From positions 143,030 through 207,029 of IMG/VR virus record IMGVR_UViG_3300042387_000948: 64,000 bases of DNA. The stretch is one strand, 5' to 3'. Position numbers and translations under genes: made by a program. The notes beneath the pieces were generated by a model. The model did no database searches, was not told where the DNA came from, and saw nothing but the letters and a program-made list of their open reading frames with translations. The number at the start of each line of letters is the position of its first letter. Positions within the stretch are counted from its first letter, which is position 1. Shown here piece after piece: positions 15,948-63,809 of the stretch.

Positions 15948-15951
15948 TTTA

Positions 15952-15983: not shown

Positions 15984-15996
15984 TGGAAAAGTGGGA
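15961..15996 (-). terminator. tmRNA terminator overlapping the downstream promoter
   Basis: TCCCACTTTTCC-ATTT-GGAATTGTGGGA followed by a run of T, directly after the CCA end. Confidence 0.7.
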
Positions 15997-15997
15997 G

Positions 15998-16377: not shown

Positions 16378-16396
16378 ATATTTTAAAGAACTCTTA

Positions 16397-16428
16397 CAAA
16401 TATACGATAAATATTTGTAATTTCCAAA
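16397..16428 (-). promoter_or_regulatory. Bacteroidota-type promoter for tmRNA (TTTG-N20-TATATTTG)
   Basis: Exact consensus ending 19 nt upstream of the mature 5' end. Confidence 0.8.
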
Positions 16429-16782: not shown

Positions 16783-16796
16783 TTTATTTAGGTTTT

Positions 16797-30978: not shown

Positions 30979-30984
30979 ATTTTA

Positions 30985-39349: not shown

Positions 39350-39350
39350 A

Positions 39351-40258: not shown

Positions 40259-43200
40259 TTAATTCATGTTTAATCCGGTCACAAATCCATAATAAGATGA
40301 GCCCCCATCAAATGTGTAAAATACTAATATATCCTCACCAGATGAAGTTAAAATTGGAGGTGTACCACCTACCCAATTTACACCACTCCAAGCTAATGAA
40401 TGTGCTCCTGCGTTTACTGCTAATAATGTAAATCCAAATGCTTTTCCAGCAGGTGCATTTGAGAATGATATTGAACCATTTCCAGTAAAAGTTCTCTTAA
40501 AGTTGTTAGCAGTTGATAAATCAATTGATGCACCACTACCACTTCCTAAATCAGAGAAAGTTTCTCTGAAAGTTGTTGATGTTGTAAATCCAGTTGTAGA
40601 TAAACTAGTTGATAGATTTACACCATTTGTTGCAATTATGTTTAAAGATGTGGGTGAAGTCAAATTAGGAGTTCCACCGGTATAAATGTTAAATGCTGAT
40701 GCGGATACGGGTCCAGTTGCTTGAATTGTACCAGTTACAGTTAATGTACTACCATCAAAAGTTAAATTACTTTCAACCCGTCCATTTGGTGCAGTACCAT
40801 CTAATGTGATAACACCATTATCAGTAGTTCCTGTCAATGCTAAGAAACCACTTAAACCAGACGAACCAGATGTTCCAGCTCCAGATGTACCCGATGTTCC
40901 AGAAGTTCCAGATGAACCAAAATTTGTTCCATCTAATCCAGATGAACCAGAAGTTCCAGATGTACCATTTGTACCTTCACCAGATGTTCCAGACGTTCCA
41001 GACGTTCCTGATGTACCACTACTACCAAATAAAGTTCCATCTAAACCAGATGTACCAGACGTTCCCGATGTACCATCTGTTCCAGTTGAACCAGATGTAC
41101 CAGACGTTCCTGATGTACCACTTGTACCAGACGAACCAAAGAATGTTCCATCTAAACCAGAAGTCCCAGAAGTTCCAGAAGTTCCAGATGTGCCATCTGT
41201 CCCAGATGTACCCGAAGTACCACTTGTTCCAGATGTTCCAGACGAACCAAAATATGTACCATCTAAACCAGATGTGCCAGAAGTTCCAGATGTGCCAGAA
41301 GTTCCATCAGTAGCATCAATTCCAGATGTTCCAGATGTACCACTTGTTCCAGAAGTTCCAAAGAAAGTTCCGTCTTGTCCACTTGTACCAGATGTACCCG
41401 ATGTACCAGAAGTTCCATTGGTAGCATCTAAACCAGATGTTCCAGATGTACCAGATGTACCATTTGTTCCAAAAAAAGTTCCATCTTGTCCACTTGTACC
41501 AGATGTACCACTCGTTCCGCTTGTACCATCGGTCCCAACACCAGATGAACCAGAAGTTCCGCTTGTACCAGATGAACCAAAGAATGTACCATCTACACCA
41601 CTTGTACCAGATGTACCACTTTCGCCACTTGTACCAGATGAACCGCTTTCTCCACTTGTACCAGATGAACCGCTTTCTCCACTTGTACCAGATGAGCCAA
41701 AGAATGTTCCATTTAAACCAGAAGTACCGCTTGTACCAGATATACCATCAGTACCACTAACACCAGATGAACCAGAAGTACCGCTTTCTCCACTTGTACC
41801 AGATGAACCAAAGAATGTTCCATCTAAACCAGAAGTACCGCTTGTACCCGATGTACCAGAAGTTCCATCAGTCCCAGAAATACCGTTTGTACCACTTTCT
41901 CCACTTGTCCCACTTGTTCCAGATGAGCCAAACAATGTTCCATCTAAACCAGAAGTACCAGAAGTCCCAGAAGTTCCAGATGTACCATCGGTCCCAGATG
42001 TACCAGAAGTTCCATCAGTACCAGAAGTTCCATCAGTACCGCTAGTACCAGATGTACCACTTTCACCACTTGTTCCGCTTGTTCCAGATGTACCACTTGT
42101 GCCTGAAGTACCAGATGTACCACTTGTGCCTGAAGTACCAGATGAACCAAATAAAGTTCCATCTAATCCACTTGTTCCAGATGTACCAGATGTTCCATCG
42201 GTACCCGAAGTACCAGAAGTTCCATCAATACCGCTTGTACCAGATGTACCTGATATACCTGAAGTACCGCTTGTACCCGAAGTACCAGATGTTCCATCAG
42301 TTCCAGAAGTTCCGCTTGTTCCAGAACTACCATCACTACCACTTGTACCAGATGTTCCGCTTGTACCAGATGAACCTTCAGCCGATGTACCACTACTACC
42401 ACTTGTACCAGATGTTCCATCACTACCACTTGTACCATTTGTACCACTTGTCCCACTTGTACCATCACTTCCAGAAGTTCCGCTTGTTCCGCTTGTTCCA
42501 GAAGTACCACTTGTACCTGATGTACCATCAGTTCCGCTTGTACCCGATGTACCATCAGTTCCGCTTGTACCCGATGTACCATCGATTCCCGAAGTTCCAG
42601 AAGTTCCGCTTGTACCAGATGAACCGCTTGTACCAGATGTACCATCAGTTCCGCTTGTACCAGATGTACCATCCGTACCGCTTGTACCAGATGTACCGCT
42701 TGTACCAGATGTACCATCAGTCCCAACACCAGAAGTTCCAGATGAACCGGAAGTACCATCAGTTCCAGAAGTTCCACTTGTCCCATCTGTTCCAGAAGTA
42801 CCGCTTGTACCAGATGTACCATCCGAACCAGTTGTACCACTACTTCCGCTTGTACCAGATGTACCATCAGTTCCGCTTGTACCAGAAGTACCGCTTGTAC
42901 CAGATGTACCGCTTGTACCAGATGTACCATCCGAACCAGTTGTACCACTACTACCAGAAGTACCGCTTGTTCCATCGGTTCCTGAAGTACCAGAAGTACC
43001 GCTTGTACCGCTTGTACCAGATGTACCGCTTGTACCAGATGTACCGCTTGTACCAGAAGTACCGCTTGTACCAGAAGTACCATTTAACCCAGAAGTTCCC
43101 GATGTACCACTTGTTCCGCTTGTTCCACTTATACCACTTGTTCCAGAAGTACCAGAAGTTCCAGAAGTACCATTTGTACCAGAAGTACCAGAAGTACCAG

Positions 43201-46200
43201 AAGTACCAGATAAACCACCGGAACCAGATGTGCCCGATGTACCAGATGTGCCAGAAGTTCCATCAGAACCATCAGCTCCATCACTACCAGATGTTCCACT
43301 TGTACCAGAAGTACCCCCACTACCTGCACTACCATCTATTCCATCCGAACCTTTTGCTCCAGATGTTCCGCTTGTTCCTGATGAACCAGACGTACCAGAT
43401 GTTCCCGATGTACCATTTAATCCGTTTACACCAGAAGTACCCGAAGTACCAGAAGAACCAGATGTTCCACCACTACCAGCAGTACCAGCAGTTCCATTTG
43501 TACCACTTGTACCGCTTGTTCCACTTGTACCACGTGTGCCACTACTTCCACTTGTTCCAGATGTTGCGGATGTACCTGATGTTCCACTAGTACCAGATGT
43601 TCCGCTTGTACCAGCAGTTCCAGATGTTCCAGATGTTCCCCCACTTCCAGATGTACCAGAAGTTCCAGAAGTTCCAGATGTTCCAGATGTTCCATCCGAA
43701 CCAGTTGTACCACTACTACCGCTTGTTCCAGAAGTACCGTCCGAACCAGTTGTACCACTACTACCGCTTGTTCCAGAAGTTCCAGAAGTTCCGCTTGTAC
43801 CAGATGAACCACTTGAACCGCTACTACCAGATGAACCTGATGAACCACTTGTTCCAGATGTTCCAGATGTTCCAGATGTTCCCGAAGTACCATCAATTCC
43901 ACTTGTTCCCGAAGTACCGCTTGTACCAGATGTTCCGCTTGTTCCAGAAGTACCATCCGTACCATTTGTACCAGAAGTACCAGAAGTACCAGAAGTACCA
44001 GAAGTACCGGCTGCCTGCTGAACATCTCTTGTTTCTAATTTTTTAGTAGTAGGGTCCCAAGTTACAACCAATTGAGAGGCTGATGATGTATAAAATTGTT
44101 GTATATATACACTACCAGTAATATCTAAACTACCAGTTATTACCAAACTACCACTAAATCTTTGATTACCTGAATTTAGTAAGAATGATGATGTATCTAT
44201 ACTTTGTGCATTTAATGCAAATTGTGCAATACTTGCAAATGATGAACTAAATACTGTCATCGATGCAGTTTGTGCATTTGTAATAAATCCTTCCGCAGAT
44301 AATACCCCACCTAATACATGAGATGCGGTTAGTGCGTAAGATGCGGAAACTGCTAATGAAGCAGTACCAACCAACATTGATGCGGTTTGTGCATTTTGTA
44401 CAAAGTTAGCAGTATCAACATTTGATGCGTTTTGTGCAAATAATGCGTAAGAAGCAGTTCTAGCAAACGATGCACTTAATACTGTCATCGATGCGGTTTG
44501 TGAATTTAACACAAATTCACCAGCATTTACCGATGCTGATATTAATGCTTCTAAAGATGCCGTATTTAATCCTATTACACTGCCAGCTATGGTTGCAAAA
44601 TTAGCGTTTACCGCATGTGATGAGGAAAGTACCGTTCCAATTACTCTATCCGCCTGAATTGTACCATTTATTAACGAACCACCACTACCAATTACGATAT
44701 GTCCACTTGTCAATCCACTAAATGTTACTTGAACAGTGTTATTATCGATTGCTAAAATAGATGCAGGAAGAATCATTTCATCTTGCGAACCAGTTCCATA
44801 CACCTGTACCATTGGGTATCTAATATCCAAATTATGTACAATCGTTACCGAACTTGCGTTACTAAATGGTACAGTCTCCGTTAATGAAGTTTCGGGTTGA
44901 GGAATATAGTATCCCCTATTCTCATCATATCTTAAAGTATTGTATTCCGCAGATGCTTCGATACCAGCTCCATTAAATGTATATGTACCATTAAATGAAC
45001 CACTAAAGAATGGAGAATATGCAAAACTTGCGGTTAATTCAGGCGTTGTTATAAAATCAGAATAAGTTCTACCATAGATACTTGCCGATGTATTAACAAC
45101 AAAACCATTATCAGGTGAAATCGATGCCGTAAATGAGCCCGATTTCATTATAAATGTTTCAAATGATAGATTTGCAATGTTGATATTATTCAAACCACTA
45201 CCATCTCCAACAAATCTACTACCACTTTGAACAATAATTGAACCACTTTGAACAATAATTGAACCAGTTACATGCAACGAACCACTTTCAATTGAAGTAT
45301 CGGTATTTATTTCCAATCCTCTGTTTGGAGATATGACAGCTTCAACAGAACCCGATTGAATTCTATCTAATTGAAGGTCTTGTAATGATTCAGCAGGAAT
45401 GTTAAATAACCCACCACCATCTCCAGCAAAAAATGATGCAGTTACCGTTACGTTTACATTTAATTTTTGTGGGTCTAATATAGCTAAAGCAGAGCCGGAA
45501 ACTAGTCTATCCAATTCTAGATTTGTCAATGCTTCAGCTGGAATGTTAAATAGTCCACCACCATCTCCTCTATAAAATGATGCCGATATCGAACCACTTA
45601 ATAATGTACTACCACTAACAACTAAACTAGAACTAAAGTTTGCATTTCTTTGAATTGTTAAAGGTACATTTGATATCAGTCCATTATTTGGTGATATTGA
45701 TGCGGTTGCACTACCACTAGCAATACGAGGTGCATCTCCGGAAATTTCAGCAATTACACCGGTCAATTGAGAACCATCTCCAAAATAAGTTGTTGCTCTT
45801 ACTGAACCACTTACTACAACACTTCCACTAAATGTAGAACCACTTGCTACTGAAGTTACTAAAAATCCAGTATTAGGTGAAACCGAAGCAGTTACCGAAC
45901 CACTTTGAATTCTTGGTGATGCCGCTGCTACTACATTTTGTAATTGAGAACCATCTCCAATAAATGTAAATGCAGCTACCGAACCACTTACAACAGTACT
46001 TCCACTAAGAATTATACCATAACCACTAACTTCCGAACCACTATAATCATTTGATATTACTTTGAATCCATATGCAGGGTCTACTGAAGCAGTTACCGAA
46101 CCTGATGCTATTAATGTTGCTACCAATGCATCAGGTGTTAAAGCTGAACGAGGGATATCAAATAAACCAGCACCACTACCACTAAATACCGATGCAGTTA

Positions 46201-49200
46201 CTACACCAACAACTTTAGTATCACCAACTAATTTTATTTCCGATGGGATATAGATGGCATCTACTACATTAATAGTACCAGCCATTGCAACATTATTCTC
46301 ATTATTGTAATAAAGAGTATCAGGTGCACTACTTGAAACTAAGAACGATATAGTTCCGTTATCTTCACCATTATTAGTTACCCAACTATCATATCCGTTT
46401 TGATTACCAATTGCACTAGCACTATTAATCCAAAATGAATATCCTACCGCATCTACGTTAAAAATATAAGAATTACCTCTTACTAATGTTAAATTTACAT
46501 TTGAACCACTAGCTGCTCCACTAAACCAATATGCAGAACTTCCATCGTTTACTACATCAAATGTATTTGGTAATTCATCCAATGGAGTAGGTCTAGCCGA
46601 TGATGAAACTACAAAACTACCACTAATGGTAGTAAATGTGTTTACAACCAATCCTTTATTTGGTGAAATCGATGCCGTAGCTGAACCACTTGTTATTTTA
46701 TTAGAAATTAGTGCATCAATAGTTAAAGCAGAACGAGGAATATCTGATAATCCGGCCCCACTACCACTAAAAAATCCACTACCGCTTGGTATTGTTATCG
46801 AACCACTTACCGAAATACTACCACTAAAAATTGAACCACTTACTATTGAAGTTACTAATAAACCAGTATTGGGTGCTACTGAAGCAGTTACACTACCACT
46901 AGCAATACGGAATACTTCACTTGCTAATGCTGATTGAGGTATATCAAATAATCCTCTACCACTACCACTAAACATTGATGCGGAAACAGGAAATTCGAAT
47001 GTTGAAAATGTATTAACTACAAATCCATCAACAGGTGAAATAGATGCAGTTGCCGTACCACTAAATATCTTTGTTGAATCAATTGCTAAGTTGGCAAGAG
47101 TAATATTAGAAAGATATCTACCATCTCCAATAAAATATGAAGAACTAGGTACATATAAATTACCACTTACAATAGTATCCCCTATAAATTTAATAGTAGG
47201 GTCAATTTGATATTTTTCTTTTATAATAATTGTACCTGCCATTGAACTATGGAATTGACAATTATAATATAAAATATTAGGAGAACCAGTTGGTGGTGTA
47301 AATGTTATTGTGGCATTTGAAGCTCCATTATTTACTACACCAATATCATATGTATCTAAAGTTCCAGTTGTTTTAGTGGTCTTTATCCAAAAAGGGTGAC
47401 CTGTTGCTGCAATATTAAATGTATATGGTACATTTTGATATAAAACTAAAGTAGGATTTGAACCACTAGCCGCTCCACTAAATACATATTCTCCACTACC
47501 AGCATTTACCACATTAAATGTAGTATCTAATGAAGATGTTGATAATTCCCAACCAGATGATGATACTATTAAACTACCACTAATTGTTGTAATTGCGTTT
47601 ATACCAAATCCAGTCAATGGGTCAGCTGATGCAGTTACACTACCACTTGCTACTCTATATGCTTCGGTTGCTAATGCAGATTGTGGAATATCAAATAATC
47701 CTTTACCACTTCCACTAAAAATGGATGCAGATACAGTATTTGTAAAGAATGCAGGTACATTTACATTAAATCCTTCCGATGGTGAGATTGATGCCGTAGC
47801 ACTTCCACTAAATATCTTTGTTGAATCAATTGCTAAGTTAGCAAGTGTTATGTTTGAAAGGAATCTACCATCTCCAATGAAAAATGAACTACTATTAATA
47901 GTTACACTACCACTTACATCAACGCTTCCACTTATTTTAGTTCCGTTTTCAACCGATTCTACAACAAATCCTCTATCAGGTATTGCGGATGCGGTTACTG
48001 AACCAGATGCTATTCTAAATACTTCTTGTGATAATGCCGATAATGGTAAATCAAATAAACCAGCACCACTACCAGTAAACATAGATGCCGATACCGTATA
48101 TTCAAAATTAGCAGGTACATTTACTATAAATCCGTCAACAGGAGATATAGATGCGGTTGCTGAACCACTTGCTATTTTATTAATTTCAAATGCTAAAGCT
48201 GATTGTGGTATTTCAAACAATCCTTTACCACTACCACTAAAGAATGAACCAGTTGTTATTTGAATACCACCACTTACAAATAAACTTCCACTAAATGTTG
48301 AACCACTTACTACCGAAGTTACTACAAAACCAGTATTTGGTGCTACCGAAGCAGTTACCGAACCTGATTTAATTTCAGTTGATACTAAAGCATCTACCGA
48401 TAATGCCGAACGAGGTATGTCTTTTAAACCAGCACCACTACCACTAAAGAATGAACCAGTTTCAACCTGTATATTACCACTAACAATTAAACTTCCACTA
48501 AATGTACTACCACTTGCTACTGAAGTTACTACAAATCCTTTATTTGGACTAACGGAAGCAATCACACTACCACTTTCTATTAAAGTTGCGGTTAATGCCG
48601 GTATATTAAACAATTGAGAACCATCTCCAATAAAAAATGATGATGATACACTACCACTAACAACCACATTCCCAATAAATGTAGAACCACTTTCTAAAGA
48701 TGTTACAACAAATCCACCATCAGGTGACACCGATGCTGTCACAGAACCAGATTTAATTTCAGTTGTTAGTAAAGCATCAAATGTTAATGCTGAACGAGGT
48801 ATATCGGTTAAACCAGCACCACTACCACTAAAAAATCCACTACCGGTGGGTATTACTATATTTCCACTAACAATTAAGCTTCCGCTAAATGTAGAACCAC
48901 TATCTATTGAAGTTACTAAAAATCCGGTATCAGGTGAAACCGAAGCAGTTACTGAACCTGATTTTATTTCGGTTGATATTAATGCATCCTGTGTTAATGC
49001 TGAACGAGGTATATCAAACAATCTAGCTCCACTACCACTAAATGATGAACCAGAACTTAATTCAATTCCACCACTTACAAATAATGAACCAGTAAATTGA
49101 GAACCACTTTCTAATGATTGAACCACAAATCCCGTATCAGGACTTACCGATGCAGTTACACTACCACTTGCAATTCTACTAGCATCACCAGATAGATTTG

Positions 49201-50227
49201 AAATAGGAATATCAAATAATCCTCTACCACTACCACTAAACATTGATGCTGATACTGAATATTCAAAGAATGCGGGTACATTTACCAACAATCCAGTACT
49301 ATCTTGAATTGATGCAGTTGCCGAACCACTAGCAATTCTATTCGAAGTTAATGCATCCGGTGTTAAAGCAGAACGAGGTATGTCAAATAAACCAGCACCA
49401 CTACCAGTAAACATTGATGCAGATACCGAATATTCAAAATTAGCAAATGTGTTTACTACCAAACCAGTATTTGGTGCAATTGAAGCAGTTGTAGAACCAC
49501 TTGCTATTAAAGTTGCGGTTAATGCTGGTATATTTGTTAGTCCACTACCATCTCCAAAAAATGAACCACTAAATGAACCAGTAAATGAACCAGTTGCAAT
49601 TACACTTCCTATAAATGAACCACTAAATGAACCAGTTGCACTATTTACCGTTAAAATATCTCTAATTCCAACCGAACCTGTTAGTTGTTGGTTATCAAAC
49701 CCACTATCTCCAAATATGTTAGAACCTGATGAATAAATTATTGATGATGATATATACGTTACTATAAGAGATTCCGCATATATTGATTTTGATACATATA
49801 AATTACCTTCAATTGATGTATTACCTTGAATTATTGCATTAGTATTTACAACTAATGAAGTACCATCAAATGATGCAGTTTGCGAACCACTTGCAATAAA
49901 TGGTGCAACTACGGATGGTACGTTTACTAAACCACTACCATCTCCTACAAAATTTCCTAAAAATGAACCACTAAATGAACCAGAAAGGTCAGCAATACCT
50001 TTAAATGAAGATGTTATTTCATTTAATACAATTTTTTGTGCAAATCCTCTATTACCCTCACTATCCGTAATTAAAATAGCCGGATTGGATTCTAAAGATG
50101 CCGAAAATGAAGGAACACCAAAGTTTGGTTCAACTTGGGATAAATCTACAAATTCGTATCTATCTGATGTTACATTTTTAGGTCCTTTTAATCGAACTCT
50201 ACCACTTAATAGGTTGCTTATTGCCAT
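40259..50227 (-). CDS. Giant fibre-like virion protein (3322 aa)
   Basis: Many [10 protein letters not shown]...[12 protein letters not shown] repeats, two cupredoxin-like domains, about 1050 aa of Gly-X-Y, and a C-terminal IDLSTANNF...W..V.W.GG.PP.LT...DIL.F.T.DGG domain. Confidence 0.8.
40845..44010 (-). repeat. About 3.1 kb (Gly-Thr-Ser)n tract with periodic GTxFG interruptions
   Basis: Directly visible in DNA and in translation. Confidence 0.95.
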
Positions 50228-50291: not shown

Positions 50292-51164
50292 TTATTCGTT
50301 TGCACTCTCTAATAAAGAAAGAATTACACTTAATTGAGTTGAGCCAGAAACTATAAAACCATATGTTTCTTCCAATACCAACTTACCAGAAACTACCGGT
50401 GATAGTGAATCAGCAGGAGGTATTAAAACATTAGTAACTAATTGTATTGGGGGTTGTGCAACTAATGTAGGATTTTCAATTGTATTTATAACAACATCGG
50501 TAAACCTTTCTAATAAATAAGATGAACCACTAAGTTCTAAATCAGTTGGTGTAATTGATGTGTTAAACGATTGAGTAACTGTATTTTGATATATTGTATC
50601 AACTAATGTTGAACCAGTTATTGATTGATTTTTAATAACTTGTTGAGCCAATATATTTGCATATTCTATTGTAAGTAAAGATGCGCTATATTCGGTAGAA
50701 TCAATTACACTAACACCATTTTTTGTAAAGAATGATTTTGCGTATTTATCTGTTCTAATTGTTGTATTATTTTTTATATCATATGCAAATGCATCAACTT
50801 GGTCCAAAGCATATCCTTCAAATAAAGATGATACAAATGTAAATGGAGTTTCGGATAAACCATTTTGATTTTGAATATATGCAGCTGTTTCTTTTCTTAT
50901 AAATTGTCTGTTAAGTGTTAATAAAGCAGATGCTGATACATAACTTCCAGTTGCTTCAATTCCAGCAAAATTTGGTGCAGGTAATTCTTTATTTGATGTT
51001 ACAAAAATAGTTACAGGTTGATTTGAAACACTATTGTTTGTAATTTGACAAGATAGTACAATTGATGAAACTCCAGCGGGAGTTGCATATATTTCATCTT
51101 GCTCACCAGTCAGAGTTGCTACTACGGACTGGAATCTATTTAAGGGTACAAAAACTTCTGCCAT
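50292..51164 (-). CDS. Connector protein paralogous to 38191..38523, with an inserted helical repeat
   Basis: IYATPAGVSSIVLSCQITN and GKLVLEE...ILSLLE ends flank one degenerate copy of the repeat from the 3067-aa protein. Confidence 0.65.
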   Translation of the reverse strand: MAEVFVPLNRFQSVVATLTGEQDEIYATPAGVSSIVLSCQITNNSVSNQPVTIFVTSNKELPAPNFAGIEATGSYVSASALLTLNRQFIRKETAAYIQNQNGLSETPFTFVSSLFEGYALDQVDAFAYDIKNNTTIRTDKYAKSFFTKNGVSVIDSTEYSASLLTIEYANILAQQVIKNQSITGSTLVDTIYQNTVTQSFNTSITPTDLELSGSSYLLERFTDVVINTIENPTLVAQPPIQLVTNVLIPPADSLSPVVSGKLVLEETYGFIVSGSTQLSVILSLLESANE

Positions 51165-51189: not shown

Positions 51190-54100
51190 TTAAATTTGTA
51201 GTGCCAATGAGAACGGAGTTACTAATGAGAACAATGATTTACTAAATGTTCTACCAACCAAAGTTCCAGTAGCTTGATTGATACTTAAACCAGTACCAAT
51301 TCTAAAGTCACCATCCTGATTTCCAGAGGTAAAGAATATTCTACCACCACCTAATTCAGTAATTTCAAATATTGGATTTGGAACACCACTACCACCCTGA
51401 TTTGGGGGAAGTGCTTTAAATGTAACACCACTACCATTGTAAGAGTAGTCAATACCAGTTGCCACAATTAGTGAACCAAATGATTCCAAAGGTGCACCTG
51501 CTGCTATAAACTCTGCTCTAGTTCTTAAATATCTATTTGTTTCCAAAGTTTCCAATAATTGGTCTCTAGTCACAGCTATTGCACTTCCATATTGACCATC
51601 ATAGTATGATGATGCTGCTCTGATTCCTCTTTCGTTTCCACCATATAATAAATCAGTTACAGCCGCATCTACAATAAATCCAGTATCACGCGAACAACTT
51701 GCCTCATTATATACTAAATATGGAAAAGCTCCATTTGTGTATCCAATTGCTCTTTGTTTTAATTCTTCTTTACCACCTTTTAATCTTTCAGCTGCTTGTC
51801 TTCTTAATGTAGTTGGTGCTAAGTAAGTTAATAGCGTATTTGCTACTATTTTTTCAGAAAGTCCTCTTGCGAAGTTTATACCATCTACCGTTTGTTTTTT
51901 CTGTCCGTTATTATCACCATAACTTTCCAAAATTGCTACTGATGGGAATTTATAGTAGTAAGAACCTGCCTCAATACTTCTTTCATTACCACCATAAACT
52001 AAATCCGTTCTAATTGCATCTATAATAAATCCTAAATCTCTAGAACAACTCACTTCATTGTATTTTAAACCACTCCAAGATGCAGATAAGAACGTTATAG
52101 TTTCTTTTTGTATTAATTGTTTGTTATCTGTCAATAATTTTGCGGTTGTCAATAATGATGCCGATGGTACTAAATATGTTGGGTTAGTTATTACCTTTTT
52201 AGATACCCTTCCGGCATATCTGATACCAGTAAGTGTTGGGTCTGATTGATTTTGTGTAGATGGAACTCCCTTATTAGTTGCATTCGATGGATATAAGTAA
52301 TAATACTGCCCAGCTATCACACTTCTTTCAGTTCCACCATATAATACATCCGTTGCTGCCGCATCTATTAAGTATCCAACATCTCTTTTACAAGTTGCTT
52401 CGTTATAATATACACTACTCCAAGAAGAAGATACATATGCGATAGTTTCTTCTGCTATAAATGCTTTATTCTTTCTTAATAAATCAAATGATGCAGATGC
52501 CTCTAATGAAGCTGTTACAAATGTAGTACCACTTACAATTTTTTGTGCTATTCTACTTGCGTAATTTATACCATCAATTGTTTGTCCTAATTGTCCTACA
52601 CCATCACCATCTCCCAATAAGATTGCTTTTGATGGATATTTGTAATAGAAATCACCAGCTACTACACTTCTTTCGTTTCCTCCGTATAATAAATCAGTAG
52701 TTGCTGCATCTAATATGTATCCTAAATCTCTAGCACATTTTATCTTATCATATTCAAAATTACTCCAACTTGCAGTTAAGTAAGCCATACTTTCACTTAC
52801 AATAAATGTTCTATTGTTTCTTAATAATGCTACGGATGATGAAACAACCAATGAAGCAGTATTGAATGAAAGATTTTGAACTAATTTAGTTGCTAAACCT
52901 TTTGCGTAATCAATTGCGGTTACAGTTGGGTCTAATTGAGAACCAGTTACTTTTGATGGAGCCTCCCAATATGCAATTCCAGCTAAAGAACTACTATGAT
53001 TTCCACCATAAAGAATATCACCAGCTACTGCCTCAACAATATATCTAATATCTCTAGAACAAGTTGTTGAATTGTACTCAAATCCACTCCAAGAAGATGA
53101 TAAGAATGATATACTCTCACTTTGGATAAATCCTATGTTTTGAGTTAATAAATCGTATGCAGCAATCTTTGATAAATCGTTTGATGGAGTTAAACCAGTA
53201 GATTGAGATACAGGTGTAGGTATCAACCAATTGTTTATAGAAGCAGATACTAATCTAGCTGCGTATTTGATTCCATCTATTGTTTCAGTTAATTGAGTAT
53301 CAGTAGCCTCCGATGGATATAAGTAATAGAACTCACCAGCTTTAGAACTTCTCTCATTTCCACCATATAATAAATCAGTTGAAACTGCATCTAAGATATA
53401 TCCAACATCTCTCTTACAAGTTTCTTCATTGTAATAGAAATCAGGGTATTTAGCGTTTATATATGCAACACTTTCACTTTGGATAAACTTCTTATTACTT
53501 CTGATTGAATCATATGCAATTGATGAAGTTACATAGAATTGTGCATTCTTAATTACATTCAATGCCAATCCTTTTGCATATCTAACACCAGTTAAAGTTG
53601 GTTCTAATTGAGAATCGGTAGCTTGAGATGGGAAATCATAATAATATTTTCCAGCTATAATACTTCTTTCATTTCCACCATATAATAAATCAGTTCTTAC
53701 CGCATCTACTATGTATCCAATATCTCTAGCACACTTAATTTCATCATATCCAAACTCACTCCAAGAAGAACTTACATAAGCTATACTTTCACTTTGAATA
53801 AATCCTTTATTTTTAGTTAGTGCTACATAAGATGCCGAAATAGTTGCTGATGCTGATATGTGAGTTAATACAATATTTTGTACAACCTTCTCAGCCACAC
53901 CACTTGCGTATTTGATTGCGGTAATTGTTTGGTCTAATTGTGAACCGGTAGCCTGTGATGGGAAATCAAAATAGAACTTACCATTAAACAACGATGCCGA
54001 ATTACCACCATATAAAAGGTCAAATGCAGAACCACTAAGGATTCCTGTCAAATCTCTCTCACACTTACTTTGAGTATATGCAAATCCACTCCAAGATGAA

Positions 54101-57100
54101 CTCATATAAGCAATAGTTTCATCAACTATGAATTTAGAGTTACTTACTAATAGATTATATGCCGAATTTATTTTTGTATTTGTATTTGCTATTGGGAATG
54201 TTGATGGTCTAAATCCAATTGAGCTTGTACCATTGTTCAATAACACATCAATTACTAAAGATAAGGATGCTGATATTAATTTACCTTGCAATCTTGCTCC
54301 ACCACTTCCACTTATAATTTGTGGTGTGTTGGTTATCTTAATACTTGCCGATGTATTTGATACAATTGTTGGAAGTAACGATGTTCCATTTTCTACAATA
54401 TCCAAAACAATTCCAAAACCAGATGATACTTTATTTATTTCAAATTGCCCAGCAGTTTGTGTATTTGCAGTTGGTAGTAATCCCGTCTTTGTAATTGAAC
54501 CACTGGCATTTGTTACCAATGTAGGAATTGAACCAGTACCATTTGCAATTATATTAACTACAGTTCCAAATGAAGAACTTACAACATTTGTTTCGGTTGG
54601 ATATGTTCCAATTCCAATTATTTGAGAATCTGAACTAATATTCCATAAGTTTGGATTATTTAGATTAAATCCATATAACGATGGAAAATTAGAAACTAAT
54701 GAATCAGGTAAAGATGATGAACCATTCTCAATAATATCAGTAATCAAATTAAATGAAGCAGTAATTAAACCAATTTCACTACCACTAGCTGAATTAGATG
54801 CTGTGATTGGAAAAATGTTATTTACTTTTATTCTACTTTCAACATTTGATACAATTGATGGTTTTACTTCAACACCACCCTCAATAATTTTAGTTACAAT
54901 ACTAAATGATGAAGAAACATTTGTTACTTCAGTAGAACTTCCACTATTGGCAGATGTTAATTGAATTACATCAGATACTTTTATGTTACCATCCGTATTT
55001 TTACCAAAATTAATTGTATCTAATGTAATATTTGATACTAATTTGTTCACTAAACTATTTGCATAATCTATTGAATCTATTGTTTGTCCTTTTTGCTCTA
55101 CCGAAGTTGCTTTTGATGGGAATTTGTAATAATATACACCAGATTCCACACTACGTTCGTTTCCACCATAAACAATATCAGTTGCTACACTATCTACAAT
55201 AAATCCAACATCTCTACTACAAGAAGCTTGGTTATATACCAAATTAGGATAAAATGCGTTAGTGTATTGAATAGTTTCTGTTTGGATAAACTCTCTATTT
55301 GCTTGTACTAAATTTCTTACATTTAATTTTTCGTTTGAAGCAGTTACAAATGTATTACCTAATACAATTTTTTGAGCCAAACCACTACCATACTTAATAC
55401 CAGTAATTGTTGGGTCTAATTGATTTGTTACAGAAGGAACACCACCAACAGTTGCTGCCGATGGATATAAGTAATAGAATCTACCGGCAGTTATTGTTCT
55501 TTCGTTACCACCATATACCAAATCGGTTCTTACTGCATCAATAATATATTTTACATCTCTCTTACATTTAATCTCATCATATTGAACACCTCTCCAAGAA
55601 GAACTTACATAAGCAACCACTTCTTCAGAAATTAAATTTTTATTTAACGATAATAAATTACTAGCATTTGTTTTGTTTTGTGAAGCAGTTACAAAAGTAG
55701 TACCAACAACAACTTTTTGTGTTATTCTACTTGCGTAATCGATACCATCAATTGTTTGTATTAATTGAGAACCAGTTGCTTGGGATGGGTATAAATAATA
55801 AAATGCACCAGCCGTTACACTTCTCTCATTTCCACCATATACTAAATCCGTTCTTACTGCATCAATTACGTGTCCAATATCTCTCTTACACTTAACATCA
55901 TTATAATCAAAATTACCCCACGAAGATGATAAGTAAGCAATAGTTTCACTTTGAATAAATTCTCTATTGTTTTTTAATTGTAATGATGCATTTTGTACTT
56001 CGGTATTTGCAAAAGAATAAACTATATTTTGTAAAGTTTTTTGTGCTAATTTACTAGCATACTTTATACCATCTACAGTTTGATTTAATTGAGAACCAGT
56101 TGCTGCTGATGGATATTCTAAATAGTATTTTCCATTTACTAATGATGCTGAATATGAATTATATAATAAATCTTCCGCTGCTCCATTTACAATTAAACCA
56201 ATATCTCTACTACAACTTACATCATTAAATACAAACCCATTCCAAGAAGAAGATAGATAAGCAATAGTTTCTGCCTGAATAAATGGAATGTTTTGTTTTA
56301 ATAAATTATATGCATAATATACAACTATATTATTAGATGCGGATACATATGATGATGTTGGTAATAATAATGATGATGTTACTCCACTATTTCCACTTAA
56401 AATATCAACTACCAATGATATTGATGCTGATATTAAAGTTGCTTCAGCAGATGTACCACTAAATGATGATGAAATGTATTGTGGTGTATTCGTTACTTTA
56501 ATACTTTGTGATGTATTTAGGGTAATTGTAGGAACTACACCTAACCCATTTTTAATAATATTTTTAATTGTTTCAACCGATGAACTAATTGCAGTTGCTT
56601 GTGTTTGAGTTGCATTACTACCAGTCCATTGAGTTACATTTGTAACTTTAATACTTTGTGATGTATTTGATTGAAATGTAGGTATTGAACCTGTTCCATT
56701 TTGTACAATGTTTATAATTGTACCAATAGAAGAACTAATTAAATTAGCTTCTGCTTGAGTTGCGGATGAGGCGGTTGTTAAAGTTAAACCACTTACAATA
56801 ATCAAATCAGATTGAGATGAAGTTATAGCAGGTGATGTTGAACTTCCACTTTGAATAATTGAAGTAATTATATCAAATTTAGTATTAATTGAAGATGTTA
56901 AATTAGCAGAAGATGTTGTTGATGTTATTTGAACACCATTTGTAATATTTAATGGATTTGTATTACTCCAATTTTGTCCATTATTTTGTGCTAAAATTGA
57001 AGGTATTACCGAAATACCTCTTTTTACAATTGATTCTATTATAGTAAACGAACTACTAACATAATTTTGTTGAGTCACACTTCCACTAAAAGATGATGTT

Positions 57101-60100
57101 TGATTTGTTAAAGATGATAATCTAAAATTCTTCTCATCATTAAAAACAATACGTGGGGTATCTAATATTTGATTTTGAACAATAGTATCTCCAATAATTT
57201 TTGCATATCTAATACCAGCAATAGTTGATGTTCTTTGAGTTGTAGTTGCTAAAGATGGATAATCGTAATAATATCTACCAGCAGTTACACCTCTTTCAAT
57301 TCCACCATATAATAAATCGGTTGCTATATTATCAACAATATACCCAACATCTCTTTTACAAGTTGCTTGATTATATTTTAAGTTTGGAAATGAAACATTA
57401 ATAAATTGAATTGTTTCGTTTTGAATTAATTCTTTATTGTTTATTAAATTGTTGTATGCAGATAATGTTGTTGCATCGGGAGCTGTAAATGGTTTTTGTT
57501 TTAATAAATTATTAATCAATCCACCAGCATATCTAATACCATCCGCAGTTTGTCCTAATTGTCCAACACCATCACCATCACCTCGTACGATTGCCAATGA
57601 TGGAAATTGATAATAGTACTCACCAGCAATTATACTTCTTTCATTTCCACCATATTTTGCATCAGTTGCTACTGCATCTAAAATGTACCCAACATCACGT
57701 CTACATTTTTCCTCATTATAATAAAAATTAGACCAAGATGATGATAAATAAGTTATTACTTCATTTTGTACAAATGTTTTGTTATCTCTAATAGTATCCC
57801 AAACATCATCTGCTTCCGTTGATGGTTCTGTATAAACTTTACCTCTAATTAAATTTAGTGACACTCCGGCTGCATGTTTCATAGCAGTTAATGTTGGTCC
57901 TAATTGTGTAGTTATTGCTTCGGATGGAAATTGATAATAAAATAAACCATTTCTAATACTTTCTTCGTTACCTCCAAAAAGTAGGTCTTTTGCTACACCA
58001 TCTACAATATATCCAACATCTCTTTTACAGGTTTCTTCCAAATATGAAAACCCACTCCAAGACGATGATACGAATTGTATTACCTCATCTTTGATAAATT
58101 CTTTGTTATTTACTAATATTTCATATGCTGTTACAACATCAATGTTTGTTTTAGCTATTGAACTACTTTGTATTGTAGCTGGATATGTTAATGTATTCTT
58201 AATTAAGTCAAATGGTGTTGTGGATGAATTTATTATATCAATCGTACCCCCCATTGAACTTCTATTCTGCGATACATAATATAATCTATTTGGTGCGTTA
58301 TAAGGTACTGTAAATGTTATTGTACCTCTACTATCACCATTATTTACCATACCAATATTATAATCATATTTTTCAGTAATACCTTCTAATTGTTCTGTTC
58401 TAATCCAAAAAGGATATTCAATTCCACCAAAATCTTCTATCGCATCTACGTTAAATTTGTAGGTTTCTCCTCTAAATAAAGTTAATGTAGGATTATTGCC
58501 AATTCCTTCAAAATTAAATGAAGAACTATTATTATTTGTTATTACAAAAGATTTTTGGTGATTAGCCGGTATTGGTAAAATATTACTACCAGTACCATTT
58601 GCTAAAATATTATAAACAATGCTAAAACTTGCACTTACGGAATTTATTGTTGCTAAAGATGATGTTACACCAAGCATGGTTTGGTCGGTAGTTCCCCCCT
58701 TTATACTACCACTTGCATTTGCTACATAAGTTGGTTTAACAGAAACACCCTTTGTAATAATATTAAGTACTGTACCAAATGATGAACTTACACTTGACGT
58801 AAGTGGAGATTCATTTGCTATTGGTTGAATCGTATCGTTACCAATTTTTCTACTAGCACTAGTGTTAGATTTAAAGTTAAATGAACCAGTACCATTTGCT
58901 AATATACTTAACAAAGCTGCATATGATGCACTTGTAGTATTTAAATCATGTTGAGTAGCTGATATTGATGATGTTATTTGTTGTGCTCCTAAAATATTAT
59001 ATGGAGAATCAAATCCATATCCTTTTATAGAACTTTTTGCTAATAAAGTTGGGAAATTAGATACACCTTTATCAACAATTTCACTTATTAATTTATAATC
59101 CGAAGATATTTCATCTGCGGCAGCAGTTGATAATGTTGTTGTTGCCGGTACTCTACTTTGTGTGTATAATACAGGTGAAGTTAAACGAATACCCTCATCA
59201 GTATTTAATTTTGTTATGGTTGGTAATCCGTTTTCCAATCCTTTGTTAAGAACATCAACAACACAACTCCAAGTTCCTCTTACACTATCTCTAGCTGCAA
59301 TGTTACCACCACTGCCAGAAATAAAACGAGAACCAGATGCATACATACCATACAAACCAAATGAAATATTTGAGTTGTTTAGTGTAGCATGTCCACCATT
59401 GTTTACTCTAATAGAATAGTATGAAAAGTTATTAAAGAAAGATACCAACTGAATAAAACCTCTACCATTAACCAAACACCCAACTCCGTTTGGAGAAATT
59501 TGAGTGTAGGCATCTAATACCATTGAAGCCAATGGTGAATCTGGGTCTACCACATCACCATTAACATAAAGACCACCACCACCCGGTGGAATATCCTCAT
59601 AGAGTTCCGTAAATGAGTTCTCCTGATTCGAAATCTGCGAGCAGTTCTGAATGTATGGGGAAGTTGTTATGAACGCTCCTGGTTGAAATGCCACAGCAAA
59701 TCCTCTTTCAGGATTTATTTGGTCTGGGAATAATCTCAAACCACCCATAGTTACCTCTGCAATATAACATCCAGAGTTTACATGAAATAGGTCTTCTGTT
59801 GGACTTTTAGCGTTAATTTTAGTAATACGCAAACCAGCACCCCAAATACTTGTGTTTTTTGGAAGTATTACAGGATTATCTTCCAAATATGTTCCTGCTT
59901 GTACTTTAATTACATATCCATTAAATACAGAACCAGTATCAAAACCATATCTACCATCATAACCAGGTGTTGCTAATGATGCTGCTTTTTTAATTGTACG
60001 AAGTGGGTATTGAATACTTCTACCATCATTTGAATCATCTCCATCGGTTGAAGATACATAAAGTGTAGGTAAATTTGCACCAAAATCTCTAGAACGAATC

Positions 60101-60393
60101 CCATCGTACAATATAGTATCTTCTGCTAATAATGCGTTAGATGCAGTTGCAGATAATAACGTTAAGTTAGCAAGATTTAATTCACCATCAATAATTAAAG
60201 AACCTGTAAGAAAAACCGAACCAGTAATTTCACCCCTATCAGTTAATTCATTTCCTAAAAAGAAATCATTATCAACCTGTAAAGAACTACTAAATAGGGC
60301 ACTTCCAGTAACAATTAAATCTCCACCAATTCGTAATGAACCGGATAGGTCTTGTTGTTCTTCAATTTGTTTACGAGGTATTAATCTTGCCAT
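51190..60393 (-). CDS. Giant virion protein (3067 aa): beta-helix region plus 15 phycobiliprotein-like helical repeats
   Basis: [14 protein letters not shown]...[16 protein letters not shown] and SPYIQNCS (pectate-lyase-like beta-helix start); 15 CxRD...DL.YGGN repeats; C-terminal [13 protein letters not shown]...TPFSLAL. Confidence 0.8.
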   Translation of the reverse strand: [3067 protein letters not shown]

Positions 60394-60776
60394 TATACTA
60401 TTTCTGCTATTTTTCCTTTAACTTCAAAATCTATTGCTCTAACATCAGCTGGTACTCTTGTTATATCAGCTATAAATGTTATTATTATATCATTATTATT
60501 TGCAATTATATTATATCTATCTTGTGGTTGTTTTACTCCATATAAATACACATCAACATAATCTTTTACATTATCAACTTCCAAAATATCAAAAATAAAT
60601 CTTTTACTTCTCAAACTTAGTGTAAAATAAATGCCATCCGTTAATACTATATCGGTTGGAAAATAACTATATGTAAATGTGTCTGTATTAACTTTTAATA
60701 CAAAATCTTTAAATCCTAACCTATCTCTCCTTTTAAGAGTTGTTCCTAAATCAATATTTGGTACTTTTCTGCTCAT
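60393..60776 (-). CDS. Hypothetical virion protein
   Basis: DVYLYGV...I.F...VKGKI C-terminal pattern shared with both upstream neighbours. Confidence 0.55.
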   Translation of the reverse strand: MSRKVPNIDLGTTLKRRDRLGFKDFVLKVNTDTFTYSYFPTDIVLTDGIYFTLSLRSKRFIFDILEVDNVKDYVDVYLYGVKQPQDRYNIIANNNDIIITFIADITRVPADVRAIDFEVKGKIAEIV

Positions 60777-61129
60777 TTGAATTTTTCTACGTCTCCGTTT
60801 ATTTTAACTTCATCAGTTTCATCGATAGTATATGGGTCACCAAACCTATCTAATTCTGGAAATTGAGTTCTTATAAATTTTATATAAAAATCGTTTCCAA
60901 TCATTCCAAAAATATAATCAGTATCTCTTATAAATAATCCATTTATAAAAACATCAAATCTTGCGGATGGCTTTCTTAAATTTTCTAATTTTGAAAATAA
61001 AGTTTTTACTCTAACGCCATCTACTTTAAAAATCCAATAAAAGGGATGTTCTAAATCATAAGCAAATAATTCAAACTCATTTGGAGCATTGACTTCTTTC
61101 ATTATGTTTTTTAATTGTGTTATGTTCAT
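60773..61129 (-). CDS. Hypothetical virion protein
   Basis: FDVFINGLFI...DETDEVKING, similar to the C-terminal domain of 61126..62190. Confidence 0.55.
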   Translation of the reverse strand: MNITQLKNIMKEVNAPNEFELFAYDLEHPFYWIFKVDGVRVKTLFSKLENLRKPSARFDVFINGLFIRDTDYIFGMIGNDFYIKFIRTQFPELDRFGDPYTIDETDEVKINGDVEKFK

Positions 61130-62190
61130 AGTTCTTGGAATTTACCAGTTATAGCAACTTCGTCTTGAGAATCTAATGTAAATGATAATGCAGTAAACGT
61201 AAATATTATTTCTTTAGTTGCCCCATTATATGAATATGTATAAGCAGATGGGGAAATAAAATCACCATTTATATAAATTCTAAACCAATTTACAATATCA
61301 AACACACCAATTAATTCGGATGGAAGTATTGGTTTTCTAACATTAGTCAATTTAACGGTAGTACCATTTACAAATTCTGCCATTTGTGAACCTCTAACTG
61401 CTACAAAATCAATTACCTGTGCATATTCATTATAAAGAGATGGTTGACTTCCTAATATACCACCGGTTAAATCTGTCTCAATCCCAAATACCACTTTTTT
61501 AGCAGTAAATGATTTTTTAACAGTTGGTTTATTGGAATGTTCGGCAGGTAATAGATATGCATTTACTACCATAGTAAATACAGTACGAATTATTCTTTCA
61601 GTACCATCCCCAACTTCTTGTTGATTATCAAATGAATCTATTCGGGTTCTAAATTTATATCCATCTTTACTTCCCCAATATCTATCAGTTGCATATTGAA
61701 ATTGTTCTACTATTTGATTCATATGTTCCGTAAATGATGTCCAAATCATTACTTCATATGTCACAGTAACATAAGATGGCATTGCAACATCATATTGTTC
61801 ATACGATGGATTTGCATTATTTTGTAAACTAAATCTTTCGTATCTATTTCTTTTTGAATATTTTTGTATAGATGGCATCGATACACCATCTTTAAAATTA
61901 GTAATAGATGAATCTCTTTCAATTGAGTTTCTTTTAAACATTACTAATGGTATTTGTATTCTACCTCTAACATCTCTTAAATACCCGTCCTTTCTAGCAT
62001 TATTCCATCTTTCCGAATTACCATATATTAATGGAACTTTTATAGGAGAACCATTTTCTTCCAATTCAGGTATAATTGTATTAACCATATAATCGGCAAT
62101 AGTAGTATCAATATCAATTAAGTTTACACTTCTTTGAACTTCTTTTTCTATTGGAATTTGATTTGCTCTATTTGTTTCTCGTATGTCCAT
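61126..62190 (-). CDS. Tail completion / sheath stabiliser (gp15-like) with a C-terminal extra domain
   Basis: KVPLIYGNSERW, PSYVTVTYEVMIWT...MNQIVEQ; follows the neck genes. Confidence 0.7.
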   Translation of the reverse strand: MDIRETNRANQIPIEKEVQRSVNLIDIDTTIADYMVNTIIPELEENGSPIKVPLIYGNSERWNNARKDGYLRDVRGRIQIPLVMFKRNSIERDSSITNFKDGVSMPSIQKYSKRNRYERFSLQNNANPSYEQYDVAMPSYVTVTYEVMIWTSFTEHMNQIVEQFQYATDRYWGSKDGYKFRTRIDSFDNQQEVGDGTERIIRTVFTMVVNAYLLPAEHSNKPTVKKSFTAKKVVFGIETDLTGGILGSQPSLYNEYAQVIDFVAVRGSQMAEFVNGTTVKLTNVRKPILPSELIGVFDIVNWFRIYINGDFISPSAYTYSYNGATKEIIFTFTALSFTLDSQDEVAITGKFQEL

Positions 62191-62651
62191 TATACTACCC
62201 TCATTTCGGTTTGAATTGAACTTTTTCTACTCATAAATGTTGAACAAATAATTGAGAAATGTTCCTGGTCACCAGTTCTACCACCTATCAATTGGTCTTC
62301 TCTCACATTATCAATTTCAAAGTAAGCATCATTATGAAAAATAATATCTCCAATTTCAGGATAAAATCCAGTATCTTTCAATGTAAATCTATTAAAACGA
62401 AAATCTACAGTTTGCCCCTGGTCAGAACCAAATCCTTCATAAGTTGCAGTTGTATCCTGTCTTTCAATCATAGCGTTACATTCAACACCCGAATAATAGG
62501 TTTTGGAAAGTGATTCTCCATAAAGATTTGTTTTTGAATTTTCTATGACAAGTTTATATAGTACAACAGCCGTAGTTACAACTGCATCTACTAATTCTCT
62601 TGATATTCCCTCGAAAAAATTTATATCACGTTGAAGTGTAAAGCGAGCCAT
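62190..62651 (-). CDS. Head closure / neck protein (gp14-like)
   Basis: NLYGES, YPEIGDII...YFEI. Confidence 0.7.
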   Translation of the reverse strand: MARFTLQRDINFFEGISRELVDAVVTTAVVLYKLVIENSKTNLYGESLSKTYYSGVECNAMIERQDTTATYEGFGSDQGQTVDFRFNRFTLKDTGFYPEIGDIIFHNDAYFEIDNVREDQLIGGRTGDQEHFSIICSTFMSRKSSIQTEMRVV

Positions 62652-62654
62652 ATT

Positions 62655-63809
62655 TTATCCGATATAAATTGCTAATGGTACTTTTCTCAACATTTCTTGA
62701 TGTTGATTTGCCTCATTATTTCTATTTTCAAATTGAACTTTTCTGCTCAACTCTTCTAAATTTTCTCTTAATTGAGTCATTAGAGCTTCTTTCTCCGTTT
62801 GGGCTTCTGCTCTCAATGCCGCACCATCCAATGATACTTCGGAACCGGGTATGGGTATAGTAGAATACTTTTCTCTAACTGCTCCCAACAATTCTTTAAC
62901 TAATGAAAGAGTATATTTTCTAATCCATTGTTTACCTACATCATTGATATCAGAATATTGAATAAAATCATATCCTACATTTGAATAATCTGCAACTACA
63001 TCCGATTGTACACCAACTGAATTTTCTATAAAATCTTTTCTCACATAATAGTCTATCCAAAGTTCTTTTATAGTTGATGCTGCTGGTCTTGGGAATATTG
63101 TCAATTTATTATCCACAATATTGAATGTATGTGCGGATTTTCTTATCAGGTCATTGAATTCTATTTGTTGAATACGAAGTAAATCCTCAAATATTGGCAT
63201 TAACACAAATTGTGCAGCCGGAGAGAATGAACCAAAACCAAATTCATCAATTAAGTTCAATGTACCTTGTCCACTTACTGAATAAGGGTCAAAGAAACGA
63301 GAGATTGCTGGTGTTACTTCAAAATATACTTTTGCTATATCAATTGGTTCTCCATTTTCATCAGGAACTGCAATCAATTGATGTAAATCGTAGACTTGCT
63401 GTGAACCAGTCAACATTATTTTTACCTTTTTGTATTCTGTCTTACCACCTGCCCCAACTAATGTACCATAGGCATCAGAAATAGTTACTAATTGTCCTAA
63501 ATTACTACCATTTACTAATTTTTGAGAATAGTTTGTTCCAGCCGCCTTACCTTTTAAGGTCTCCAGATTATTTCGTATATTAAATTGATTAACTTGTGCT
63601 CCATATTCAGATGTTGCCTCTTCAAAACATGCGTAGAAGTTTTCATCTACCAATTCCACATTTTGGATTGGATAACCTAATCTTCTAGCACACCATAAAG
63701 CAACCTTTGGAGCATCCGATTGAAATGTATAATCATTATCATATATTTCAAAAGGTGTTTGACCGGGAAAGAATGATGATGAACCGGGATATATTAATTC
63801 TTGTGCCAT
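62655..63809 (-). CDS. Neck / head-tail adaptor (gp13-like)
   Basis: RRLGYPIQNVEL, WIRKYTLSLVKELLG.VR.KY, V.LDG..L..EA..EK..L, final IYIG. Confidence 0.85.
   Translation of the reverse strand: MAQELIYPGSSSFFPGQTPFEIYDNDYTFQSDAPKVALWCARRLGYPIQNVELVDENFYACFEEATSEYGAQVNQFNIRNNLETLKGKAAGTNYSQKLVNGSNLGQLVTISDAYGTLVGAGGKTEYKKVKIMLTGSQQVYDLHQLIAVPDENGEPIDIAKVYFEVTPAISRFFDPYSVSGQGTLNLIDEFGFGSFSPAAQFVLMPIFEDLLRIQQIEFNDLIRKSAHTFNIVDNKLTIFPRPAASTIKELWIDYYVRKDFIENSVGVQSDVVADYSNVGYDFIQYSDINDVGKQWIRKYTLSLVKELLGAVREKYSTIPIPGSEVSLDGAALRAEAQTEKEALMTQLRENLEELSRKVQFENRNNEANQHQEMLRKVPLAIYIG

Follow-up and report, generated by a model that had tools for sequence, protein, structure and literature searches.

Fifteen repeat units in a giant tail-fibre-like protein

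We have analysed a window of 64,000 nucleotides of viral DNA (positions 143,030 to 207,029 of the IMG/VR record IMGVR_UViG_3300042387_000948) in which one minus-strand open reading frame (ORF) encodes a protein of 3067 amino acids (aa) that carries tandem copies of a helical unit of ∼108 aa (Table 1). The initial annotation of this DNA had described a giant virion protein with 15 phycobiliprotein-like units, each having an invariant C-x-R-D motif that contains its only cysteine. In fact, the motif occurs exactly 15 times in the translation, the codons of the motif cysteines run from 58029-58027 to 51696-51694, within 1 nt of the positions first given, and the two unit peptides that had been quoted are found in units 3 and 9. 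The protein has 19 cysteines in total and there is a single one per unit because the remaining four sit in the N-terminal region, at aa 209-377. The distance between neighbouring motif cysteines of an array is 105-119 aa, and the 15 units are split into three arrays (3 + 4 + 8) with Ser/Thr-rich spacers of ∼275 aa between them, which hold a mini-repeat of their own (SSSF..I.NII.NG.G..PT).

Alignment of the 15 units showed that C39, R41, D42, D53, Y69, S74, Q80, and T84 (unit numbering) are invariant, with a mean column identity of 54%, and that the other units are 36-58% identical to unit 9. A hidden Markov model (HMM) of the unit recovers the 15 copies with E-values of 1e-26 to 1e-46, while Tandem Repeats Finder detected no DNA-level array, from which we conclude that the copies are old. 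A sixteenth unit, which lacks the cysteine, is located at aa 77-186 of the 290-aa product of the next gene downstream (unit HMM E 1.3e-21); it has F-E-G-Y in the place of C-x-R-D and retains the D53 equivalent, and F/Y-x-x-Y variants resembling this one were also found in other phages.

The 3067-aa protein matches two PHROG families of giant tail-fibre and virion proteins (phrog_4527 and phrog_5342, E 1e-134 and 1e-124) and its gene sits in a minus-strand T4-like tail module. From these matches and the gene neighbourhood we infer that it is a tail-fibre-like protein of the virion, which agrees with the assignment made at first. No relevant family was found in a Pfam scan of the whole protein. 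The N-terminal and C-terminal regions gave no interpretable match in phmmer searches against the PDB, the N-terminal one showing a weak match to 7v6m at aa 110-167 (E 3e-4). The plus strand of the giant gene also contains a 165-aa ORF (54128..54625). Antisense ORFs of this kind are numerous in the AT-rich sequence, and there is no sign that this one is a gene.

Relationship of the units to phycobiliproteins

When a profile of the 15 units was searched against 177,635 PDB sequences only two matches were obtained, both of them phycocyanin alpha chains aligned at the Cys84 site (E 0.7-1), and among 18,950 NCBIfam models TIGR01338, C-phycocyanin alpha, matched the whole protein best (E 1.1e-4). 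The profile comparisons with hhalign were based on 120 CpcA sequences and on real copies of cpcA, cpcB, cpeA, and cpeB that are carried by cyanobacterial plasmids, and the phycocyanin alpha motifs given in the initial annotation agree with the 120 CpcA sequences (KC[AV]... and Y[IV]EALK[YH]IK). CpcA residues 38-105 (helices A, B, and E) were aligned to unit residues 4-60 with a probability of 70-79% and a P-value of 2-4e-5. The score of 35 was exceeded in none of 150 column-shuffled alignments (12 ± 2.5, maximum 27), and reversed-alignment controls scored 9-11. A more permissive alignment reaches, at low confidence, the IIAG/LIAG and P-S motifs and the Y-x-K of helix G. Both the profile match and hhalign place the C-x-R-D of the unit in register with Cys84 of CpcA, and a tblastn search of related loci with CpcA gave up to 35% identity across 66 aa.

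Structure prediction pointed to the same proteins. AlphaFold2 (AF2) modelled unit 9 (53527-53847; 15-sequence alignment) as all-helical, with a pLDDT of 82 and a pTM of 0.76, and a Foldseek search of this model against 350,542 PDB chains returned phycobiliproteins as all of its top 50 matches (probability 0.99-1.0), the best template modelling score normalised to the query (TMq) being 0.82 for 2vjh_B, with a root mean square deviation of 2.6 Å over 112 columns. Because the KCARDIGY motif of unit 9 might have prompted recall of the fold, a control was run with units 4-5, in which the corresponding residues read SCSRDIGL and KCKRDIGH, and 100 two-unit sequences, a few of them copies from the same phage, taken from 75 related IMG/VR loci that we had retrieved and from which 1,190 units were extracted. 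This two-unit model (pLDDT 89, pTM 0.81) has five helices per unit, equal in both, and phycobiliproteins were its sole PDB matches with a Foldseek probability above 0.25, reaching 0.96. Both models gave TMq values of 0.7-0.82 against phycobiliproteins, the scores normalised to the target being lower (0.45-0.55) because the unit is shorter than these proteins. Every unbiased scan that matched the unit pointed to one family, the phycobiliproteins, and the likeness extends beyond the motif, as had been claimed, in the two models, in the best PDB and NCBIfam matches and in the hhalign alignment.

Several results weigh against this assignment. Allowing E-values of up to 10, PF00502, which had been put forward as the Pfam family to look for, still matched neither the giant protein nor a single one of its 15 units, and the match to TIGR01338 scored 22 bits against a family cut-off of 269. 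A more diverse profile of 93 units found no PDB sequence, and the sequence-profile evidence is therefore insufficient on its own. The Foldseek E-values of the unit 9 model against the PDB are only 0.1-0.5, and the KCxRDIGY motif, which AF2 saw during its training, may have biased the models. Furthermore, the unit is predicted to span helices A-G (A, B, E, F, F', and G), starting at the equivalent of CpcA 35-38 in helix A directly after the preceding unit, and it is devoid of the X/Y helices and apparently of helix H, with an 11-residue deletion in the B-E loop, which covers the bilin in phycobiliproteins. These three differences place the unit outside the canonical phycobiliproteins, and they also mean that its pocket may be open or absent.

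Taken at their worst, such results could indicate convergence or a prediction artefact, that is, an unrelated five- or six-helix bundle with a C-x-R-D motif by chance. The Foldseek E-values of 0.1-3 across both models, the lack of Pfam matches and of PDB matches with the 93-unit profile, and an hhalign probability below 80% speak for this reading. However, it would leave unexplained that several partly independent lines, namely the PDB sequence matches, NCBIfam, hhalign against shuffles, tblastn, and the two AF2 models converge on the same family and register, that the top 50 structural matches all belong to one family, and that the alignment covers helices A-B-E, plus F-G at low confidence, and we consider it very unlikely. 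We regard the unit, with considerable confidence in view of the models and profiles, as a truncated phycobiliprotein-type globin fold that is in all likelihood homologous to the phycobiliproteins.

Conservation of the chromophore triad and candidate ligands

A search of 1.84 billion representative proteins with the 15-unit profile found 1,322 proteins (clusters at 50% identity) at E ≤ 1e-3, and 536 at E ≤ 1e-30. These proteins contain from 2 to ∼36 units, and most of the best 150 listed are 1,000-6,400 aa long. Conservation was calculated over ∼1,560 units from the best 150 of the 1,322 proteins, and in this set the chromophore triad, equivalent to Cys84-Arg86-Asp87 of phycocyanin alpha and usually accompanied by the preceding Lys83, is strongly conserved (C39 95.1%, R41 94.9%, and D42 98.2%, with K38 at 52%). 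Exactly one cysteine is present in 83% of the family units. D42 was lost in 24 of the 69 units that lack the cysteine and in just 1 of the 1,490 that have it, and this near confinement of the loss to Cys-less units argues that Cys and Asp act as one functional site. Other positions are conserved at a similar level, namely D53 (99.4%), Y69 (98.4%), and T84 (90.9%).

The glutamine of the Q-x3-T motif had also been reported as invariant, which holds for the 15 units of this protein but not for the family, where position 80 is Q in 59% of the units and E in 36%. This affects the suggestion that each unit forms a reactive Cys-Gln thioester, an internal bond that would allow covalent attachment to the host surface. 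Although Q80 and T84 are invariant in this protein, Glu cannot form a thioester, the thioester-domain adhesins need both the Cys and the Gln to be conserved, and the phage units fail on the latter. Moreover, the predicted fold is all-helical and phycobiliprotein-like, not that of a thioester domain, and the extended hhalign alignment places Q80, at low confidence, in a stretch that is inserted with respect to CpcA, so that we give this idea hardly any weight.

In phycobiliproteins, CXRD is recognised as the motif to which the bilin is attached. It is likewise found in bilin biosynthesis-associated globins (BBAGs; Rockwell et al. 2023, PMC10151467), proteins of non-photosynthetic bacteria that bind bilins with no need of a lyase. 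Judging from the conserved triad and the modelled fold, we tentatively propose that each unit binds a linear tetrapyrrole at its cysteine by a thioether bond, so that the fibre would bear a row of pigments, a proposal whose chances we place a little below even. The main rival, which is less probable but has to be taken seriously, is structural exaptation, in which a helical domain derived from a phycobiliprotein would have been captured and multiplied as a rigid bead to set the length of the fibre, free of chromophore, and C, R, D, D53, and Y69 would be kept for folding, packing, and contacts between chains. D53 and Y69, the most conserved residues, have no counterpart or role in phycobiliproteins, which speaks for such a bead. 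So does the retention of D53 in 68 of the 69 Cys-less units, which indicates that this residue serves something else and that part of the conservation is not related to bilins. The shortened B-E loop and the missing helix H point in the same direction, as do the copy number, which varies as would be expected for a length module, and the pTM of the two-unit model, which suggests a fixed geometry between units. However, a bead does not predict that exactly the three residues that contact the chromophore are retained at 95-98% in so many diverged units, nor that the Asp is lost almost solely alongside the Cys, and a lone free cysteine in each extracellular domain would be unusual in a scaffold.

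Searches for genes of bilin metabolism also speak against bilin binding. Genes for heme oxygenase, bilin reductase, or lyase, which the initial annotation had recommended looking for, were not found by PHROG and Pfam scans of the ORFs of the 64-kb window, outside which lie a further ∼140-215 kb of the genome, and no match to cpeT, pebA, or a 2OG oxygenase was obtained with tblastn, either in the window or across the 75 related loci and their flanks.

The ligand could also be another one. The units might display heme or another tetrapyrrole to exploit an uptake receptor, or they might be receptor-binding modules for a ligand on the host surface. The globin-like superfamily binds varied tetrapyrroles, with BBAG-2 proteins being specific for biliverdin (PMC10151467), the giant gene is placed among tail-fibre genes, and the family-specific invariant residues D53, Y69, and T84 could form a different site. 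Nevertheless, it is the bilin triad that is conserved and not a heme-ligating His, and 15-36 internal repeats in a shaft are unlike the usual receptor-binding tips, which makes this alternative distinctly improbable in our opinion.

Distribution and probable host

The distribution of the unit among isolates was investigated in 50,697 phage records. The giant gene gave no megablast match in this set, and a tblastn search with units 8-10 matched 67 records, all of them cyanophages. With a marine-type query from S-PM2 the number of matched isolate records was 360, and these were Synechococcus or Prochlorococcus phages or carried the label 'Cyanophage', with one labelled 'Marine'. Among isolates, the domain is restricted to cyanophages, and it may serve as a marker of these phages in metagenomes. 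The matched genes are annotated as short tail fibre, tail protein, virion structural protein, or gp7 baseplate wedge initiator, and none of the annotations mentions a likeness to phycobiliproteins. The S-PM2 ORF S-PM2d218 (3,779 aa) has four units, three of them with CxRD, and a minimum of two units with this motif occur in gp7 of P-HM2 (4,454 aa). In BFVD, essentially all the high-probability matches (TMq 0.82-0.89) were tail or structural proteins of cyanophages or uncultured caudoviral phages. A scan of 185,579 cellular genomes for a degenerate DLLYGGNER motif, which covers the freshwater-type motif only, returned six loci and zero units.

The window phage had been assigned at first to a Bacteroidota host. 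Its sheath and UvsX proteins are closest to those of the Microcystis phage Mel-JY01 (48% and 54% identity, respectively), followed by an uncultured 484-kb phage and then by Flavobacterium phages (35%). Given this order and the cyanophage nature of the isolates that bear the domain, the phage, a myovirus, most probably infects a cyanobacterium, and a Bacteroidota host is not supported. Neither a unit nor synteny with the giant gene was found in the first 35 kb of Mel-JY01. The sheath of the Kyanoviridae is only ∼29-39% identical to that of the window phage, with the aligned part being 42-57% of the protein, and the window phage does not belong to this family, which is a different myovirus lineage. 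Because the isolates with the domain are cyanophages and a Bacteroidota host is unsupported, there is no need to invoke the earlier idea that the units mimic phycobiliproteins to bait bloom-degrading hosts.

Gene neighbourhood

The features of the giant gene and of its surroundings are collected in Table 1.

Table 1. Features of the giant tail-fibre-like gene and its neighbours (positions in the window)
Feature	Position	Strand	Basis
Giant tail-fibre-like structural gene, 3067 aa	51190..60393	-	ORF list, translation, PHROG matches
N-terminal region, aa 1-440, four non-CxRD Cys	59074..60393	-	aa 111-215 match tail-fibre family phrog_5342
Ser/Thr-rich spacer 1, aa 441-750, mini-repeat	58144..59073	-	Motif scan, S+T 25%
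Array 1, units 1-3, aa 751-1080, Cys 789, 897, 1012	57154..58143	-	Motif, alignment, unit HMM
Ser/Thr-rich spacer 2, aa 1081-1355	56329..57153	-	S+T 35%, three mini-repeat motifs
Array 2, units 4-7, aa 1356-1793, Cys 1394, 1502, 1610, 1725	55015..56328	-	Motif, alignment, unit HMM
Ser/Thr-rich spacer 3, aa 1794-2072	54178..55014	-	S+T 27%, three mini-repeat motifs
Array 3, units 8-15, aa 2073-2968, Cys 2111, 2221, 2326, 2445, 2553, 2668, 2783, 2900	51490..54177	-	Motif, alignment, unit HMM
Conserved C-terminal domain, aa 2969-3067	51193..51489	-	aa 2974-3065 match C-terminal ends of phrog_3442 and tail-fibre family phrog_17885
Upstream neck/tail-completion genes: gp13-like (62655..63809), gp15-like (61126..62190), three small ORFs	60393..63809	-	PHROG head-tail adaptor and tail sheath stabilizer; Pfam Phage_T4_gp13, T4-gp15_tss
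Downstream gene, 290 aa, one Cys-less unit	50292..51164	-	Unit HMM, translation, weak phrog_4527 match
Next giant fibre gene, 3,322 aa, collagen-like tail-fibre repeats	40259..50227	-	PHROG tail-fibre families
Tail-fibre assembly gene	38906..39379		PHROG
Further giant fibre gene, 2,242 aa, collagen-like tail-fibre repeats	31443..38171	-	PHROG

Three giant fibre genes are packed within 29 kb, and the sheath, tube, and baseplate genes lie beyond the downstream fibre genes. A six-frame HMM scan of the 3,322-aa fibre gene found zero units. Two adjacent small paralogous genes on the minus strand (30622..31383) match DUF7936, and a full-length tmRNA gene is present at 15998..16377 on the same strand (Rfam RF00023, 99.6 bits, E 1e-37, model positions 1-374 of 374), whose tag peptide according to ARAGORN is ADVELSTMTFGDAMAWMESFDYAVAA.

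The window forms the final 64 kb of a 207,029-bp IMG/VR contig, and a 279,674-bp contig also carries its genes. In the latter, just past the low end of the window (12307-14203 and 20658-21782 of the locus retrieved from it), there are genes for a thioredoxin, two Mom-like proteins, a family B DNA polymerase, and a DruA-like protein. The ∼10 kb adjoining the window contain replication genes, the two Mom-like genes, and DruA, and no photosynthesis or bilin genes were found there. In S-PM2, a cpeT gene coding for a T-type bilin lyase homologue (3845-4372 of the retrieved locus) is located 1.4 kb upstream of the giant gene that bears the units (5821-17160 of the same locus), from which it is separated by several consecutive tRNA genes, two small ORFs, and a gene for a 2OG-Fe(II) oxygenase; this proximity may be a coincidence.

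Discussion

According to the bilin-binding model that we tentatively prefer, the 15 units would be a truncated, phage-borne branch of the phycobiliprotein and bilin-binding-globin fold, nearest to phycocyanin alpha in sequence, strung as three arrays of beads along a tail-fibre-like protein of a myovirus. A bilin would be joined via a thioether to the single cysteine of each unit, with the Asp contacting its pyrrole nitrogens and the Arg its propionate, as they do in phycobiliproteins. Loading would take place inside the infected cell, from bilin synthesis of the host or of the phage, and attachment could be either autocatalytic, as in BBAGs, or mediated by a lyase. The most likely use of the pigment would be to couple light to the behaviour of the fibre, namely adsorption, or to protect the particle from light, although to choose between these two roles is speculation. 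By a rough estimate, a suspension of 1e11 particles per ml in which each virion bears tens of bilins would give ∼0.001 absorbance units. We know of no reports of coloured phage preparations, and because the expected absorbance is so low their absence is uninformative.

A role in light responses would be a speculative extension of the bilin-binding model. Adsorption of S-PM2, P-HM1, and P-HM2 needs light independently of host photosynthesis, and light-sensitive tail fibres have been proposed, without a molecular candidate (PMC6628666; PMC2984593). Both S-PM2 and P-HM2 have CxRD units, while the dark-adsorbing podovirus P-SSP7 has no unit. This contrast, like the position of cpeT in S-PM2, is anecdotal and does not amount to a correlation because the domain is found in 360 cyanophage records and few cyanomyoviruses are likely to be without it. 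The units could act as a virion-borne photoreceptor through which the tail fibres or the baseplate of a cyanophage respond to light, and this would account for the long-known light dependence of adsorption, but we regard it as unlikely.

Phycobiliproteins are regarded as cellular light-harvesting proteins, and to our knowledge their only relatives outside phototrophs are the recently described BBAGs. A literature search, carried out mostly outside subscription journals, found no description of phycobiliprotein-like domains in structural proteins of phages. What appears to be new is not the fold or the C-x-R-D motif but the truncation and tandem arrangement of the units in virion fibres and their occurrence in phages only. 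The units make up a large phage-borne branch, with a triad that is under strong selection in virion fibres. If the units do bind bilins, phage particles would carry pigments, the purpose of the bilin genes of cyanophages would have to be rethought, since ho1, pebS, pcyA, and cpeT would gain a target in the virion, and the 15-year-old question of light sensing in cyanophage adsorption could be addressed by simple assays. If no bilin is bound, a fold of host photosynthesis would still have been captured and rebuilt as a viral structural module.

Comparison with known systems

The unit shares with phycobiliproteins such as CpcA a predicted globin-like fold over helices A-G and, in equal register, the sequence K-C-x-R-D-[IV]-G-Y of helix E with the G-G that comes after it; similarities to FP(Y/N), which closes helix B, and to Y-x-K in helix G are weaker. 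It differs from them in its size (∼108 aa compared with 160-175 aa), in the absence of the N-terminal X/Y helices, on which the alpha-beta interface and the assembly of (alpha-beta)3 discs depend, and apparently of helix H, and in that up to 36 copies are fused in one phage-encoded polypeptide of the virion, phycobiliproteins being encoded by the cell. Like the BBAGs, some of which have the CXRD motif, the phage units would be phycobiliprotein paralogues outside the phycobilisome (PMC10151467). However, BBAGs, with which we compare the units by description only, are single-domain cellular proteins whose genes cluster with those for heme oxygenase and a ferredoxin-dependent bilin reductase (pre-PcyA), whereas the phage units are tandem and structural and the window has no such genes. 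Further parallels are the giant fibre and baseplate proteins of T4-like cyanophages (S-PM2d218, P-HM2 gp7, and the 'virion structural proteins' of Syn9 and S-ShM2), which have in common with the window protein the CxRD unit, the predicted fold found in BFVD, and the PHROG families, although these Kyanoviridae proteins are 18-38% identical to it and carry fewer copies each.

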